Sequence record: PP712906.1
Length of the DNA stretch: 64,000 bases
Direction: 5' to 3' (one strand)
Shown here: positions 8,024 through 52,709 of the stretch, in pieces
Layout: each line of letters starts with the position of its first letter
How positions within the stretch are numbered: position 1 is the first letter of the stretch
The notes under the pieces: model-generated
Databases searched by the model: none
Seen by the model: the letters and a program-made list of their open reading frames with translations, nothing else
What the model was told of the DNA's origin: nothing
Program-made: the position numbers and the translations under genes

Positions 8024-8031
8024 TATAAATA
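8024..8031 (+). promoter_or_regulatory. T4-type late promoter
   Basis: Exact TATAAATA, 25 nt upstream of the ATG at 8057. Confidence 0.8.
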
Positions 8032-46888: not shown

Positions 46889-47308
46889 ATGTTAAAGAAA
46901 ATATGGCAAGCATTATTTCCAGACCCTGAATGGAAAGTAGCCGCATACACAGCTCAGAAGTCGTTCGATGTATCTAGCTCTTGGTGTAATAAAGGGGTTA
47001 TTAAGTGTCGTGCAGTTATTCTAGTAGACAAGCATGACCGCCGACAAGTTAGAGTAGTATTCGATGAGTACGATTATGGTCGAGAAATATCAGCGTACAA
47101 TGAGAACTTAATTCGAAAAATCTTATCGAGTAATAGTCTGGCATTGATTCGAGGCTCGATGAGTACTAGAAAGTTGAATAGCTATGATGGATTTGATCTG
47201 TGCGAACACCACGAAGCATTCTACGATTGGGAAACATTCAAGAATAACTTCATTTATGGTGAAGTTGATTTATGCGGGAACTTAATTGAGAAAAGCGAAG
47301 CGGAATAG
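46889..47308 (+). CDS. hypothetical protein
   Basis: GAGGT RBS. Confidence 0.75.
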   Translation: MLKKIWQALFPDPEWKVAAYTAQKSFDVSSSWCNKGVIKCRAVILVDKHDRRQVRVVFDEYDYGREISAYNENLIRKILSSNSLALIRGSMSTRKLNSYDGFDLCEHHEAFYDWETFKNNFIYGEVDLCGNLIEKSEAE

Positions 47309-47338
47309 CCAACTGAGGCGGAAAAATTCCGCATCATC

Positions 47339-47388
47339 TTAGTAGAATTAGTAGTTTTAGTGAAGTTAGTAATATTAGGAGTATTAGA
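47339..47388 (+). repeat. six TTAG at exact 9-nt spacing in a gene leader
   Basis: TTAG at 47339, 47348, 47357, 47366, 47375 and 47384. Confidence 0.85.
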
Positions 47389-48084
47389 ATGAAAAAGCTC
47401 GTACTTGTAGCTGCCGCTGCTGTAGCTCTTGTTGGATGTGGTGATTTGCCACGCCTGGAAACTAAGACAGACAAGAAATTCACCACGGTTAATGCAGTTG
47501 TGAACAAAAAAGAGCGTGAAATGATTAACTACTGGATGGCAGATGCTGACGGTAGTAACTATCTTTACAACAAGCTTTGGACTGCTCTTGCTACTCGTAA
47601 CAAATACGGTTCTAATGCTGTGCGTCGTTCAGATGATGAAGTTCCGTTCTGTGATGTCATTGTAGCTCTTGCTAAATCTGAAGAAGATATTCGAAGCACG
47701 TACGAGCGTACATTTAATAATCAGTGGCGAACTCAATACGGCATTAGTCTTAATCAGCAATGTGGCTATACTCCACCAGAAACACTCGAAGAGCAAGCAG
47801 AGCGCGTTGAGAAACTTGAAATGCAAGCTGATTTGAAAAAGCGTGAGCAACAAGCACAGAGTATTGAAACGCTTGATGACGTTGCCGACGCGACGACTGA
47901 GCTACTTGATCCGCATGAGTACGACTATCTGATCGAATCGGCACGCGAGTGTAATCGAGCCAAAACCAAATTGCTTGAACTAACGCAAGCAGGCAAACCT
48001 TTGACACAAGCTGACGGCTCAGATGCACGTAAGCTAATTATCGAATGCAAAATGCATAAACTTGAAGTTGAATTGAATAAGTGA
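47389..48084 (+). CDS. lipoprotein, paralog of 59929-60648
   Basis: Lipobox LVGC; shared VPFCDVI, QW..QYGI.L..QC, CNRAK and KLEVELNK. Confidence 0.8.
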   Translation: MKKLVLVAAAAVALVGCGDLPRLETKTDKKFTTVNAVVNKKEREMINYWMADADGSNYLYNKLWTALATRNKYGSNAVRRSDDEVPFCDVIVALAKSEEDIRSTYERTFNNQWRTQYGISLNQQCGYTPPETLEEQAERVEKLEMQADLKKREQQAQSIETLDDVADATTELLDPHEYDYLIESARECNRAKTKLLELTQAGKPLTQADGSDARKLIIECKMHKLEVELNK

Positions 48085-48091
48085 GAAAAAC

Positions 48092-48874
48092 ATGTTGAGA
48101 ACAAATATTGCGATTGAAGAACTGAAAATCCGAATGCATCCGTTCGATCAAGTTGCGAACGCAAACAACGACGATAGCTCAGTTCGCGACTGGCGCCAAA
48201 TCCCTGACGTTGCTAATGACAATATCTTGAAGAACTCGGTTCTACCGTCGTGGGTAATTCGAGAGTTTCACTGGCGTGATATTTCATTCAATCAACCATC
48301 AATGGGTGATCTGCCCGTTGAGTACAAAACAGAAGCAGGTGAAATCGGTAAATGTCAATCGCATTATCTCGGTGAACTTGATGATTGCAAGTTCTGGCGC
48401 CCTGATATTGTATCTTTGAATGCTCAATTCATTGATTCAAAAGACGTTGATAAAGCACTTGCAGAATTGCAAGCCGTTGATGTGTTTGACGCTTCACAAG
48501 GATTCGCTGACGGTCGACCTGACCCGGTTAGTCACAATGAACACGGTATAACCGATGATGAGCTTGAAGCTGCAATCGTCGAAGCTGAAATGGCAGCGGC
48601 TGTGGATGCTTTAAAAGTTGAGTCGCAATCGTTGTTCGATCCAGATCATGTTTATTACATGAATGAAAAGTATTATATTATCGGTGACGATCCGTTTGAC
48701 GAAAATTACTGCTATGCGTTGAATGCTGCAAAATACCCACAGCGTATTGCAAAATCCCAACTCGTAACCGATGAGCAATACAAAGAAGCTGAAGTTTTGA
48801 AGAATCAGTTCCCGCAGATGTGGACTGCTCAAGATTACGCAAAGCTTGCTAAGTTCATTCGCAGCAAAAAGTAG
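48092..48874 (+). CDS. acidic hypothetical protein
   Basis: 260-aa ORF. Confidence 0.75.
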   Translation: MLRTNIAIEELKIRMHPFDQVANANNDDSSVRDWRQIPDVANDNILKNSVLPSWVIREFHWRDISFNQPSMGDLPVEYKTEAGEIGKCQSHYLGELDDCKFWRPDIVSLNAQFIDSKDVDKALAELQAVDVFDASQGFADGRPDPVSHNEHGITDDELEAAIVEAEMAAAVDALKVESQSLFDPDHVYYMNEKYYIIGDDPFDENYCYALNAAKYPQRIAKSQLVTDEQYKEAEVLKNQFPQMWTAQDYAKLAKFIRSKK

Positions 48875-48880
48875 TTTCCG

Positions 48881-48911
48881 ATGCGGGTTGTTACGACATC
48901 CCGCATAAATA
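48881..48911 (+). promoter_or_regulatory. hairpin abutting a late-promoter-like CATAAATA
   Basis: ATGCGGG-T-TGT-TACG-ACA-T-CCCGCAT; CATAAATA at 48904-48911 is one mismatch from TATAAATA. Confidence 0.55.
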
Positions 48912-48943
48912 GTTCTATATGGACTAACAAGGAAATTACGACA

Positions 48944-49474
48944 ATGCCAACTCCTACAACAGGTGCGATTTCAATCGGTACCGTTCGTGATTATTTCAGT
49001 AGAACCGGCGCTGCTTCATTGTCTCAGTACTACAGAGGCGGCGGTATTGTTCCTGATATTACTGAAAATGCTCACGTACCAACTTCAGGCGCGATTAGCT
49101 TGAATGACTTGCGCGGTGTATATCGCTTGTCAACGTATACGACATCATTTACGACAACATACAACACCACTGTATCAACATCGAATACGACTTCGCGTAG
49201 TACATCAAGAAGTACAACTAGAAGTACTGCATACAGTACAACTCGCTCGACTGCGTATACTACTAGTTGGACAACTAGCCGAACTACGTCGGTGACTAAA
49301 GGTTCGTATTCGACATCATACACGACTTCTCGTGCTACATCACGTTCAACATCATATAGCACGACACGTTCAACAGCTTATACGTCTACGTGGACAACAT
49401 CATGGACAACCACGTACAACACAACAGTATCAACATCAAACACAACTTCGCGAAGCACGCAAGTTGCAGTTTAA
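48944..49474 (+). CDS. Thr/Ser-rich fibre/adhesin-like protein with tetrapeptide repeats
   Basis: AAGGA RBS and ATG at 48944. N-domain with two GAIS motifs, then 13 + 13 [YWFRVN]-[STN]-T-[STA] repeats around VTKGS. Confidence 0.85.
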   Translation: MPTPTTGAISIGTVRDYFSRTGAASLSQYYRGGGIVPDITENAHVPTSGAISLNDLRGVYRLSTYTTSFTTTYNTTVSTSNTTSRSTSRSTTRSTAYSTTRSTAYTTSWTTSRTTSVTKGSYSTSYTTSRATSRSTSYSTTRSTAYTSTWTTSWTTTYNTTVSTSNTTSRSTQVAV

Positions 49475-49486
49475 CAGGGTTAAATT

Positions 49487-49705
49487 ATGAGCTACAATGA
49501 AGAACACGAGAACCGAATCAACGAGCTTGAGAACAAGGTTTCAAAGCTTGAGTCGATAATTGAAAATCTGGTCGAGTCAATGACTTCGAACAGCGAAGCT
49601 ATTATCGAACATATTGCATCACTTGAGACCGAGAGGGATTCGATTCTTGCATCATATGATGACAAACTTAATGAGATCGTGACCAAATATGAACCCAAGC
49701 AATAG
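49487..49705 (+). CDS. small coiled-coil protein
   Basis: Heptad pattern INELENKVSKLESIIENL. Confidence 0.75.
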   Translation: MSYNEEHENRINELENKVSKLESIIENLVESMTSNSEAIIEHIASLETERDSILASYDDKLNEIVTKYEPKQ

Positions 49706-50543
49706 AGAAATGACTGGGTTCAATAACATTTCTCGCACCGGTAAGTTGAAATTACAATCCGATGCAGACAACGTCCGTGCCATGTGTATGGACGTTGTTC
49801 GTTTATTGAACTCTAAAAATATACCATCTAACTTCGACATCAATCACAATGACGGTGGTAACATCGGCGTGCATGAATGGGTGTCACAAATCCGCTTCAT
49901 TCACTTGAAATACATGAACGTTAATTTCCAAACGAAGATTTTCAAGCATGCCTATCATAACACTGAAAACGTCGTTGACTATTTTGACACGTTCAAACAT
50001 TCTGACAAATATCATCTATCAGCGAAGCCTAGATTTTTAGAATATGAAAACGTCGTATTTCTATGTGGATCGAATGTACTTGAATTGGCAATTGACTTTG
50101 ACAAGATTGATACGCTGGTCGAACATTATCCCGATTTAGTGATCAAACCACACCCGATTACGACGCTGTATTACATCAATATGCTTAAAACTCGATATGG
50201 ATCGAAGCGCGTGCTTTCTCAGAAGATCAGCGGTGTTGATGTTCTTAAATCTGCTAAACGTGTTTGGCTACCTTCAACGTCTGAGTTCTGGTTTAGTGCC
50301 TTGAACTACGACAAAGAAATCGGGTTTATCTCTAAAGATGGTTTCTGTGGAACGTACACGTCAATCATCAACGCAGTATGGGAATTGCATGAAGAAACCG
50401 GTGATCCATTGAAAGATATTGTGAATAAAATTATCTCGTCACCTTACTCAGGTCTGTATGGTAGTATGGCAGACTTTGAAGAGCATCACGAGAAATACTG
50501 TAATGTGATTCTAGAACTAGGGGGTAATTTCGATAATGTATGA
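49689..50543 (+). CDS. KpsC/KpsS-like (GT-B) polysaccharide transferase
   Basis: LVIKPHP motif, then LKSAKRVWLPSTSEFWFSALNYDK, the typical layout of beta-Kdo/capsule-modification transferases. Confidence 0.6.
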   Translation: MNPSNREMTGFNNISRTGKLKLQSDADNVRAMCMDVVRLLNSKNIPSNFDINHNDGGNIGVHEWVSQIRFIHLKYMNVNFQTKIFKHAYHNTENVVDYFDTFKHSDKYHLSAKPRFLEYENVVFLCGSNVLELAIDFDKIDTLVEHYPDLVIKPHPITTLYYINMLKTRYGSKRVLSQKISGVDVLKSAKRVWLPSTSEFWFSALNYDKEIGFISKDGFCGTYTSIINAVWELHEETGDPLKDIVNKIISSPYSGLYGSMADFEEHHEKYCNVILELGGNFDNV

Positions 50544-51168
50544 TTATGTAATTCACACTTCGATTAGTGACAAAAGTCAGCTAAACCAACTAGTGATGTT
50601 TGTCGGGTCTTTCATCGAGACGCACAAAAAAGGTCGCGTGGTCTGCGTGACTGATCTTGAACTTGATTTCACGATGCCTCGACTGTCATTTGAGAAAAAA
50701 CTACCCGAAGAGTACGTTTTCATTTCAGTTGACAATCTATTTTTACAAAAAACATACGGCGTTGTTAGCTACATTGACAGTGGTACTTGGCGATGTACTT
50801 GGCAAAAGAATGATCATGATGATTTCGTCATTAAAAAGCATGGCGAAAGAAGCGGGTTGATTCACCCTGATATTGCAATTGCAAATTACAATGTTTCGAG
50901 ACATGGCGATCTCGACATGTATTACAACGCGCTTCGTTACATTGAGAGCGCAATCACGATCAACTGCAAAGACTTTGCCCCTGCTGCTGAGAATAAAATC
51001 AACAGCTTTTACACGCTTGTATTTCCATGGGAGATTTATTTTCACGTTATGATCACTTACCAAGAGTATATTGATTCTGAATACGTTGAGCGAGTTCGCG
51101 CTAACTGTCATAAGTTCGCACACTCGGTTTATTACAGAAAATCAGGGTTGTTACGTGATGGGTTATGA
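50536..51168 (+). CDS. divergent GT-A-like (nucleotide-sugar transferase) protein
   Basis: QLVMFVGSF..., VCVTD, FISVDNLFL resemble the GT8-type layout; weak. Confidence 0.35.
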   Translation: MYDYVIHTSISDKSQLNQLVMFVGSFIETHKKGRVVCVTDLELDFTMPRLSFEKKLPEEYVFISVDNLFLQKTYGVVSYIDSGTWRCTWQKNDHDDFVIKKHGERSGLIHPDIAIANYNVSRHGDLDMYYNALRYIESAITINCKDFAPAAENKINSFYTLVFPWEIYFHVMITYQEYIDSEYVERVRANCHKFAHSVYYRKSGLLRDGL

Positions 51169-51841
51169 TGAGATAATTTTAGTATCTGGTCTTGATAGTT
51201 TAGTTCTATATGAATTTCTTGAACGAAAGCCACACCCTGTTTACTTTAAATGGGGTTTTGCTATCGACGACATTGAAATGGCTGCTTTGCCTGAAGAAAC
51301 AACTATCATAGAAATGCCAGAGATTTTGCATTTGAAACATGATCCGTATGAGTTCAAGACACCAAGAAATCCCGATTTAATTGGTCGGAATACGTTGATG
51401 TTTAACTCAGTTTTCCATGCATTCAGACCAAACGTAATTTATCGCGGGATGTTGAAAGGTGATGATTTCTATTACGACGCATCGCCTACGCATTCAGATG
51501 AAATCGCAGCTATGTGGTCGAAAATGCTGAATAAAGAGTGTCGAATTGAACAACCGTTTAAAGACAAAACGAAACGTGACATAATGCAAATGGCGGTCGA
51601 ATACGGTATTGATGCGAATTCATTACAGCATTGTTACAATCGAGAACACAACTGCGGTCGATGTAGCAAGTGTGTGGATGCACATGTTAATTCTATGTAC
51701 ACCGACAACCCAGACATCATGTGGCTGAAACGAATAGTTAATGACTCGGGTATGGCATCATTGGCTAATCACATGTTTGGTGTTGATACAGTTGACAGAA
51801 TAAAGGAATTTCTAGATGAATTTGATCGAACAGACTGCTGA
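51158..51841 (+). CDS. QueC-like PP-loop ATP pyrophosphatase with Zn site
   Basis: ILVSGLDS, GRNTLM, YYDAS, PFKDKTK.DI and HCY...CGRCSKC. Confidence 0.8.
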   Translation: MGYDEIILVSGLDSLVLYEFLERKPHPVYFKWGFAIDDIEMAALPEETTIIEMPEILHLKHDPYEFKTPRNPDLIGRNTLMFNSVFHAFRPNVIYRGMLKGDDFYYDASPTHSDEIAAMWSKMLNKECRIEQPFKDKTKRDIMQMAVEYGIDANSLQHCYNREHNCGRCSKCVDAHVNSMYTDNPDIMWLKRIVNDSGMASLANHMFGVDTVDRIKEFLDEFDRTDC

Positions 51842-52709
51842 TAAATTCGAGCATAGTTACCGAGAAGACGTTCAAGGCGTACAGTGGTATTTCGGTAGTC
51901 GAACGCATGATTTTTATCTGTATGGAATAGACTCTCTTATTGATAAAGTCAAAGACTGTGATTTTATTGAAATCAAGCATGTTCAAGAGGGTACGCTGGT
52001 TAAACGAGGCGAAGCTGCGGTCACGGTTACGATTACAGATCATAGTCGTATCGCATATGGGAACATGATTGAAACATTGTTGTACAATGAGTTGTGGTAT
52101 TCGAGCACGGTCGGTACGATTTTACACCGTTGTCTTGATGTGTTGCATGAAAACGGCTATGACGCTCGTTCAGCATACCCTCAAATCGGACGGGCGAGTT
52201 CAACGCCAGAACAGTCAGCTAAAGCAAGGGATGTGTTCGCACGTATATTTTATCAATCGTCGAATGAGAAAATACCCGTTGCGATGCACAGTGATATTTT
52301 AATCAACGGTGAGGAATATTGCATGGAACATTATAACGGCATCATGATTGATACTTTCGATAAGCAAGCTTGCATTGACTTGATCAACAAGAAAGACTTT
52401 CGAGGGACTGTGATGGTTGACTCTCAGCCAATAATTGAAACAATTGAGAGAGTTCTAGCTGAAACAAAATGCTTTGTTGCACAAGCTGAAAGTGTTACAC
52501 TCGATGAGTGGATAGAGATAGTGCGACATTTTAAAGGCAATAAGCGAATTTTCTACGGGATTGGTAGCTTTGCATTTAGCAATATATCACGAGACACATT
52601 TGGTTTGATTTACAAAGTGTGTGCAGTTAAGAAAAACGACAACTGGATCGGAGTTTCAAAGATGACGACAGGTAAACAAACATCGGCTGGTTATAAGGTT
52701 ATAGGTTAG
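51816..52709 (+). CDS. divergent, shortened Nampt/NAPRT-family phosphoribosyltransferase
   Basis: Aligns by eye to nadV in this window: HVQEGT vs AVKEGT, IETLL..LWYSSTVGT vs LETFI..LWYPTTVAT, MHS vs EHS, IDTFD vs MDSYD, RDT..K vs RDT..K. Confidence 0.8.
   Translation: MNLIEQTADKFEHSYREDVQGVQWYFGSRTHDFYLYGIDSLIDKVKDCDFIEIKHVQEGTLVKRGEAAVTVTITDHSRIAYGNMIETLLYNELWYSSTVGTILHRCLDVLHENGYDARSAYPQIGRASSTPEQSAKARDVFARIFYQSSNEKIPVAMHSDILINGEEYCMEHYNGIMIDTFDKQACIDLINKKDFRGTVMVDSQPIIETIERVLAETKCFVAQAESVTLDEWIEIVRHFKGNKRIFYGIGSFAFSNISRDTFGLIYKVCAVKKNDNWIGVSKMTTGKQTSAGYKVIG

Follow-up and report, generated by a model that had tools for sequence, protein, structure and literature searches.

What is the role of a small phage protein whose C-terminal part consists of threonine- and serine-rich tetrapeptides? 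The question is raised by KVP40.0254, a gene in a window of 64,000 nucleotides from sequence record PP712906.1, to which all positions below refer. Over bases 47000-52000 this window shares 100% identity with Vibrio phage TCU-VP03-AIR1, where the coordinates agree, and with bases 129344-134343 of KVP40; the window is that of a KVP40-type Vibrio phage (Schizotequatrovirus). The product is annotated as 'hypothetical protein', or as 'cell wall mannoprotein' in several related records (phi-pp2, PVA8, QD01), and a comparison with Pfam gave zero matches at E <= 1. We propose, with moderate confidence, that it is a small accessory fibre protein or adhesin of the tail-fibre apparatus, made of an adaptor domain and a fold-back hairpin. 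It is filed here as a tail-fibre accessory or receptor-binding protein on a repeat architecture for which no prior description was found in the literature. The evidence consists of the sequence architecture, a mirrored complementarity between two repeat arms, gene contexts and the linkage to a partner gene.

In KVP40.0254 a 62-residue N-terminal domain (N-domain) precedes 13 tetrads of the form X-S/T-T-S/T, a V-T-K-G-S turn and 13 further tetrads. A preliminary description of this DNA, made from the sequence alone, had given the same layout, including two G-A-I-S motifs in the N-domain, and the translation confirms it apart from the length of that domain, put at 60 residues. The non-Ser/Thr X residues stand at positions 65+4i (14 positions, Y65-V117) and 122+4j (14 positions, Y122-V174), the repeat shifting its phase by one residue at V-T-K-G-S. 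Thr occupies tetrad position 3 in 25/26 tetrads. The C-terminal 114 residues comprise 46 Thr, 29 Ser and 1 Gly (66% Ser+Thr), with ten Arg/Lys, zero Asp/Glu and a net charge of +10. The four Asn of the repeat region all lie in N-T-T, as had been stated; these N-glycosylation sequons were set aside as an automatic by-product of the repeat composition and carry no weight as a hint of glycosylation.

The two arms were compared by scoring every antiparallel register (a+b constant) for Arg/Lys residues opposite Tyr/Trp/Phe, like-like contacts being counted as clashes. The best register, a+b=239, brings all 14 X-X positions face to face and yields 9 cation-aromatic pairs with 0 clashes: F69-R170, R85-W154, R89-W150, R93-Y146, Y97-R142, R101-Y138, Y105-R134, W109-R130 and R113-Y126. 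One face then shows Arg-aromatic rungs alternating with Thr-Thr rungs, and the opposite face consists only of Ser, Thr and Ala. The two-residue turn places the cation-aromatic pairs on non-hydrogen-bonded sites, and the 57 residue pairs would measure about 19 nm if extended. The register given in the preliminary description (13/1', 11/3'; a+b=235) is one tetrad off, with 5 pairs and 4 clashes.

The same rule was found in orthologs. The best registers are 239 in KVP40 (176 aa; 9/14 X-X pairs cation-aromatic), 231 in QD01 (168 aa; 9 pairs), 240 in K575 (177 aa; 12 pairs) and 231 in D479 (170 aa; 13/13 pairs), with 0 clashes in each, and all are centred on the conserved G-K turn. When Arg, Lys and aromatic residues were permuted among their own positions with the register left free (5000 trials each), the observed score was reached in 35/5000 shuffles for KVP40, 66/5000 for QD01, 3/5000 for K575 and 0/5000 for D479. 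The lengths differ, yet the last residue pairs with residue 61-63 in 4/4 proteins and the arms remain equal. QD01 is one tetrad shorter in each arm. Several rungs flip their orientation among orthologs, Y-R in one facing R-W in another. In K575 and D479 two Cys flank the turn, as expected of a disulfide in an extracellular protein. The very long beta-hairpin originally suggested is thus supported by mirrored complementarity in four orthologs, equal arms, the G-K turn, the paired tetrad loss of QD01 and a low-confidence AlphaFold2 model that turns at the same place, in a register other than the one first drawn.

Unrelated metagenome proteins follow the mirror rule over longer arms. The 368-aa protein of locus L031 forms 24 pairs with 0 clashes around D-G-K-S-S-G (shuffles 0/400), its second-best register giving 10 pairs and 3 clashes (net score 7 vs 24), and the two arms show an irregular 4/6 spacing in mirror image. 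The 623-aa protein of L037 forms 38 pairs with 2 clashes around a central insert (shuffles 0/400), and the 656-aa protein of L021 forms 17 pairs with 5 clashes (shuffles 4/400). The arms measure roughly 140 residues in L031 and 300 in L037. In smaller or more irregular Thr/Ser proteins the rule was not individually significant. Equal Thr/Ser arms with Arg/Lys opposite Tyr/Trp/Phe in one register are thus a class feature found in the four orthologs, L031, L037 and L021. Two further proteins of about 425 aa with Thr/Ser-rich arms (L023:791-2068 and L026:794-2068) have a Cys-rich centre with many C-x-x-C-like spacings; judged from its sequence, this centre may form a head, rich in metal or disulfides, at the tip.

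A DNA palindrome was ruled out as the cause of the mirror symmetry, inverted repeats being absent from the gene, and its sole DNA repeat is direct (79% over 75 nt) and connects the beginning of arm 1 with the end of arm 2. Recent slippage was ruled out as the origin of the repeat by the sparse arrays found with Tandem Repeats Finder (just two 12-nt arrays of about 2 copies each) and by the spread of Thr and Ser over 9 codons. Comparison with five close relatives that are not identical to the window places 58/86 substitutions at third codon positions, with zero internal stops and a gene length constant at 531 nt. The amino-acid changes are mainly S/T/A/N swaps, with V162I/R, R20K in the N-domain and T118A beside the turn. 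KVP40.0254 is an intact gene under purifying selection in the + frame; a spurious open reading frame (ORF) or a wrong frame is ruled out because the substitution pattern and the conservation favour this frame, and a 96-aa reverse ORF and the ORFs of other frames were set aside as by-products of codon composition. The true start is the ATG at 48944, with AGGA (48930-48933) 10 nt upstream, and homologs open with M-P-x-x-x-S-G. A longer ORF from the ATG at 48881 was ruled out: this ATG lies within a stable stem-loop, and homolog starts fit 48944. The deposited annotations of K575 (L008:2969-3746) and D479 (L009:3097-3737) miss the hairpin gene, calling short ORFs on either strand instead, and give the neighbouring 72-aa gene in a 5'-extended form; apparently the low complexity of the coding sequence led the gene caller astray there.

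The N-domain, present as a single copy in phage KVP40, carries its G-A-I-S motifs at residues 7-10 and 49-52. An exhaustive phmmer search with residues 1-65 retrieved 947 representative clusters at E <= 1e-3. The domain is nearly always N-terminal, most of the 150 hits listed aligning from residues 1-9. KVP40.0254 shows the family pattern S-G-x-I-S ... Y-Y-R-G-G-G-x-V-P ... N ... V-P-T-S-G-x-I-S, in which Y30, R31, G32, G33, P37, P46 and G49 are invariant or nearly so. The domain matched neither a Pfam family nor any structurally solved protein in the PDB; the AlphaFold2 (AF2) model gives it a predicted local distance difference test score (pLDDT) of 78-90. BFVD returned an ortholog and a few proteins with the N-domain, one of them called 'phage tail protein'. 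The modules that follow the domain in its family are highly varied: glycine-rich gp38-type modules, PKD and SprB beta-sandwich domains, and Thr/Ser repeats, in some relatives split by a globular or Hint domain. In P0012 the N-domain stands ahead of a full PF05268 gp38 module (residues 69-273), the G-A-I-S domain lying outside the PF05268 model. The metagenome proteins P0014 (L006:4691-5671) and P0016 have Thr/Ser-Trp/Tyr arms with a Hint (intein-like) domain between them; the N-terminus of P0014 is a divergent but recognisable N-domain without G-A-I-S, and P0016 is without a recognisable N-domain.

The N-domain matches 35 Vibrio phage records, in which the gene is present. In all of the non-Vibrio contexts examined (8/8) the N-domain gene lies 0-1 genes after a tail-fibre or other large gene: after a T7-type fibre gene in a podovirus (T7-like) contig, and in Xanthomonas phages RTH11, Rb1 and X1, Stenotrophomonas phages DLP6 and ANB28, Ochrobactrum phage OC and Ralstonia phage YL1. 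The upstream gene is a tail-fibre gene by annotation in 6/8 contexts and hypothetical in ANB28 (993 aa) and YL1 (338 aa). In Vibrio phage VH7D the gene syntenic to the hairpin gene, gp152 (L042:2474-3007), encodes 177 aa with three S/T-G-x-I-S-x-x-D-x-R copies and an unrelated C-terminal domain, and a PagP-like gene comes next. VH7D lacks the KVP40 block that runs from the hairpin gene to gene 30.2, partner gene included. Retention of the N-terminal motif with exchange of the C-terminal module is the pattern of receptor-binding cassettes. Attachment to the virion through the G-A-I-S domain, as first suggested, has contextual support, from the gene neighbours of the family and the gp38-type fusions; in KVP40 itself the gene stands among non-structural genes.

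A 284-aa gene accompanies the hairpin gene. With tblastn, relatives of this partner appeared in 35 records of Vibrio phages, in 9 of Caulobacter phages and in no others, and a scan of bacterial genomes found none. The order in Caulobacter phage Lullwater is tail fibre, a 215-aa protein rich in Thr, Ser, Tyr, Trp and Arg, partner homolog and holin; in Caulobacter phage Cr30 it is a fibre-like protein, a 116-aa Thr/Tyr-rich protein, partner homolog and neck proteins. Scanning IMG/VR with the alignment of the partner family gave 19 loci, 16 of them new, and in 15/16 of the new loci (the exception is L025) a Thr/Ser-rich protein is encoded directly upstream of the partner or one gene away. These upstream proteins contain at least 30% and up to 62% Ser+Thr, with periodic aromatic and Arg residues. 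The gene preceding the Thr/Ser-rich gene has PHROG tail-fibre matches in L034, L035 and L036, and after the module L021 has a baseplate gene. Counted from the Thr/Ser-rich gene, the partner lies 0-2 genes downstream in the window, QD01, K575, D479, Lullwater, Cr30 and 15/16 new loci. A small Cys-rich, zinc-ribbon-like protein of 64-72 aa is encoded after the partner in several metagenome modules (L021:3609-3827, L023:3621-3830 and L029:3569-3763).

Among 15 aligned members of the partner family D50, Y108, G127, N129, K153, H155, P156, T158, E199 and G255 are invariant, including a K-P-H-P motif, and this residue set looks enzyme-like. All its matches to sugar transferases are below threshold: Pfam GT52 in 1/15 members (E 6e-4, 19.5 bits vs a cut-off of 26.1), Capsule_synth in one member (E 0.006), polysialyltransferase (polyST, GT38) in three members (E 0.047) and, in the PDB, KpsC over an S-x-M-G ... 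L-G-K-E segment (E 1.3-2.4). The Pfam matches that have the lowest E or recur in several members form one set, that of transferases dependent on CMP (cytidine monophosphate)-sugars. The scans also list unrelated families (E 0.03-0.7), and in one of the PDB comparisons the top match is a tRNA methyltransferase subunit (E 0.045). CMP-sugar glycosyltransferases of the GT-B fold have a His-Pro motif and a downstream Ser/Thr-Glu element in their nucleotide-binding half. K153, H155, P156, T158 and E199 are invariant in the 15 sequences and may correspond to these motifs, as judged from weak alignments only. From these sequence comparisons we give the partner about an even chance of being a glycosyltransferase, and a higher one of being a dedicated maturation enzyme of the arms. 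The idea that the arms are a scaffold for dense glycosylation, raised in the preliminary description, gains some colour from the co-inherited partner, its sub-threshold CMP-sugar transferase matches and the invariant K-P-H-P; it stays weak, no curated cut-off having been reached. The adaptor, the hairpin and the partner are covered by no named family.

These elements can be combined in a scheme; what it says of the fold, the place in the virion, the oligomeric state, the ligand and any modification is inferred. The adaptor domain (residues 1-62) would dock the protein onto a fibre, because the genes of its relatives sit after tail-fibre genes, as does gp38 in T-even phages. Residues 63-176 would fold back at K119-G120 into one long two-stranded antiparallel beta-ribbon. 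The arms would be a stalk and the turn its distal tip, because relatives bear a globular or Hint domain at the turn; the tip would be bare in KVP40 and carry a head or Hint domain in those relatives. The cationic aromatic face may bind anionic, sugar-rich surface glycans of Vibrio, the ribbon being suited to an anionic surface because of its charge and its lack of acidic residues. The partner would be a maturation factor that works on the hydroxyl face of the arms, most probably as a glycosyltransferase. A wider and more tentative proposal, which we regard as possible, is that Thr/Ser arms zipped by Arg/Lys-aromatic pairs represent an undescribed fibre fold of tailed phages, a length-tunable fold-back stalk, the hydroxyl face of which is decorated by a phage-only enzyme family, probably of sugar transferases.

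Table 1. Features of KVP40.0254 and its surroundings in the 64,000-nucleotide window.
Feature	Position	Strand	Remarks
Stem-loop GCGGG-N12-CCCGC	48883..48904	+	GC-rich; between genes 0253 and 0254
CATAAATA	48904-48911	+	directly after the stem-loop; 7/8 match to the T4 late-promoter core
Coding sequence of the hairpin protein, KVP40.0254	48944..49474	+	176 aa plus stop; PHROG 30374, unknown function
N-terminal adaptor domain	48944..49129	+	residues 1-62; two G-A-I-S motifs, Y-Y-R-G-G-G-x-V-P core
Hairpin arm 1 (predicted)	49130..49297	+	residues 63-118; X at 65 to 117
Turn K119-G120	49298..49303	+	midpoint of the best register (a+b=239); AF2 strands interrupted at 119-120
Hairpin arm 2 (predicted)	49304..49471	+	residues 121-176; X at 122 to 174; V176 pairs with S63
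72-aa coiled-coil-like ORF	49487..49705	+	between hairpin gene and partner; PHROG 5851, unknown function
284-aa partner gene	49689..50543	+	enzyme-like, phage-restricted family; candidate CMP-sugar-type glycosyltransferase

The region upstream of the gene (48875-48950) has an RNA folding energy of -21.8 kcal/mol (z = -3.5). The stem of its stem-loop is kept in QD01 with a changed loop; K575 has a different hairpin upstream of the gene, which would sequester its GGAGG. Most of the window is apparently non-late, because the exact T4-type late promoter core TATAAATA occurs as a single copy in 64 kb (8024-8031), below the shuffle mean of 2.1. Further upstream, KVP40.0252 (47389-48084, 231 aa) has an N-terminal lipoprotein signal, a hydrophobic stretch ending in L-V-G-C, and weak matches to lipoprotein families and to a Cor-type superinfection-exclusion PHROG. 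Downstream, the 72-aa ORF is co-inherited with the hairpin gene in Vibrio phages and conserved in QD01, K575 and D479; it was not found in the non-Vibrio modules, and no similarity to the 170-aa middle gene of the metagenome modules was found. Its size and position recall small fibre chaperones, a likeness with no family match behind it. A 210-aa downstream gene was ruled out as a member of the module, as no relative of it stands beside the partner gene elsewhere.

Several observations weigh against a tail-fibre hairpin. The best parallel offset nearly equals the antiparallel register in KVP40 (9 pairs, 3 clashes) and QD01 (10 pairs, 2 clashes); the weight of the hairpin argument lies with K575, D479, L031 and L037, and not with KVP40 and QD01 alone. 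The AlphaFold monomer, a check that the preliminary description had named, is of divided value: the arms reach a pLDDT of just 30-46, and the modelled strands (100-118 vs 121-139 and 62-73 vs 164-175) break at the very turn of the best register. A Foldseek comparison with solved folds gave no match, the best rows having E >= 0.65. The partner reaches no curated glycosyltransferase cut-off, NCBIfam gave nothing for it, and its AF2 model, computed from a 3-sequence alignment, has a mean pLDDT of 35, which makes it unusable for calling a GT-B fold. A virion proteome or transcriptome of a KVP40-like phage was not found in the literature. Moreover, KVP40.0254 sits among non-structural and metabolic genes (QueC-like, phosphoribosyltransferase-like and radical SAM genes, and nadV of NAD salvage), outside any tail module, and the late-promoter site before it is only a 7/8 match in a window with one exact core.

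This last setting would also suit an intracellular protein that never enters the virion, co-expressed with metabolic genes: a polycation rich in Arg and Tyr that binds nucleic acid or the precursor of a host surface polymer, or else a condensate-forming scaffold. The lack of an exact late promoter before the gene, the net charge of +10 with regularly spaced Arg and aromatic residues, and weak geometric Foldseek matches that include hairpins of single-strand-binding proteins (all E > 1) point the same way. However, the relatives of the N-domain adjoin tail-fibre or large upstream genes in 8/8 contexts and are fused to gp38-type, PKD and SprB adhesion modules, and elsewhere the hairpin-plus-partner pair lies inside tail modules. 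The Cys pairs at the turn in K575 and D479 and the exchange of the C-terminal module at the same site in VH7D, as in receptor-binding cassettes, likewise argue against such a role, which we consider unlikely.

The complementary residues might instead meet between chains, three or more copies assembling into a six-stranded needle or a cross-beta fibril that would serve as an oligomeric fibre shaft. A lone two-stranded ribbon of 19 nm would be unusual, the arms of L031 and L037 are far longer still, an all-hydroxyl face could form a core, and the tip of T4 gp37 is a trimer with fold-back chains. Against this arrangement, complementarity is centred on the turn of each chain itself and the C-terminus returns to residue 61-63. 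In addition, gp38-type adhesins, which hold the same gene position, are monomeric according to PMC12032242. We consider pairing between chains improbable.

Slightly less probable again is a disordered, mucin-like Ser/Thr tract that would carry dense O-glycans without a defined hairpin and be anchored by the N-domain. It would fit a C-terminal part that is 66% Ser+Thr and modelled at a pLDDT of 30-46, a partner with weak glycosyltransferase-like matches, and the virion glycosylation of Ser/Thr-rich proteins in mycobacteriophages. Disorder, however, needs no period of 4, no near-invariant Thr at position 3, no equal arms and no conserved turn; nor does it need the paired tetrad loss of QD01 or the mirroring of cations and aromatics (13/13 in D479, 24/24 in L031).

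Other candidates were set aside. Pore-forming beta-hairpin stems were the top Foldseek PDB rows (E >= 0.65, TM-scores of 0.1-0.2), a geometric likeness to any long hairpin, and are disfavoured because a face with Arg every few residues is not membrane-like. A match to the serine-rich protein family NF033849 (19.4 bits vs a curated cut-off of 650) is compositional. So is the label of a yeast Tir/Srp1-type mannoprotein, for which there was no Pfam match; in the phi-pp2 paper it is one row of an annotation table with fig|...peg identifiers, given there as similar to yeast Tir proteins (PMC3468402), and in our view an automated assignment prompted by Ser/Thr composition. The label is misleading in the several GenBank records that carry it and should go.

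If the tail-fibre hairpin reading is true, names and testable roles can be given to three unannotated families: the adaptor domain (947 clusters), the Thr/Ser hairpins and their obligate 284-aa partner. They seem to be components of the part of the phage tail that recognises receptors, a region in which the majority of genes stay 'hypothetical'. The hairpin would be a rare natural case of a very long two-stranded sheet held by a cation-pi ladder, relevant to folding and design. If the partner is a glycosyltransferase, phages of Gram-negative marine bacteria would offer an instance of programmed glycosylation of the virion.

In function the nearest analogue is the gp38 adhesin (T-even/S16-type, PF05268), whose defining features KVP40.0254 does not share. 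Both are small two-module proteins in which the N part docks, or here would dock, on the fibre and the C part is a low-complexity repeat; genes for N-domain relatives stand where the gp38 gene does, some with a full PF05268 module. KVP40.0254 itself is without a PF05268 match, has 1 Gly in its C part where gp38 has glycine-rich receptor-binding motifs, and is not adjacent to a tail-fibre gene, its neighbours being hypothetical or metabolic.

Three chains of gp37, held by metal-binding His motifs, form the needle at the tip of the T4 long tail fibre, each running outwards before it turns back. As proposed for KVP40.0254, the chain travels to the distal tip and returns, both ends are proximal and the tip bears a binding head, which fits the relatives with a globular or Hint insert at the turn. 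Unlike gp37, KVP40.0254 has no His and has arms of Thr/Ser tetrads with Arg-aromatic pairs, and comparisons of sequence and of fold gave no link between the two. In mycobacteriophages, phage-encoded glycosyltransferases O-glycosylate Ser/Thr-rich virion proteins. Here, too, a Ser/Thr-rich segment is encoded beside a gene with (sub-threshold) glycosyltransferase likeness, but the tract is strictly periodic and self-complementary and not a simple tail. Finally, designed tryptophan-zipper and cation-pi beta-hairpin peptides of 12-16 residues are held by 2-4 pairs. The arms of KVP40.0254 resemble them in their cross-strand aromatic or cation-aromatic pairs on non-hydrogen-bonded sites and their tight two-residue turn; unlike these designed peptides, the predicted hairpin is natural, 114 residues long, and has 9-13 pairs, with up to 38 in relatives.

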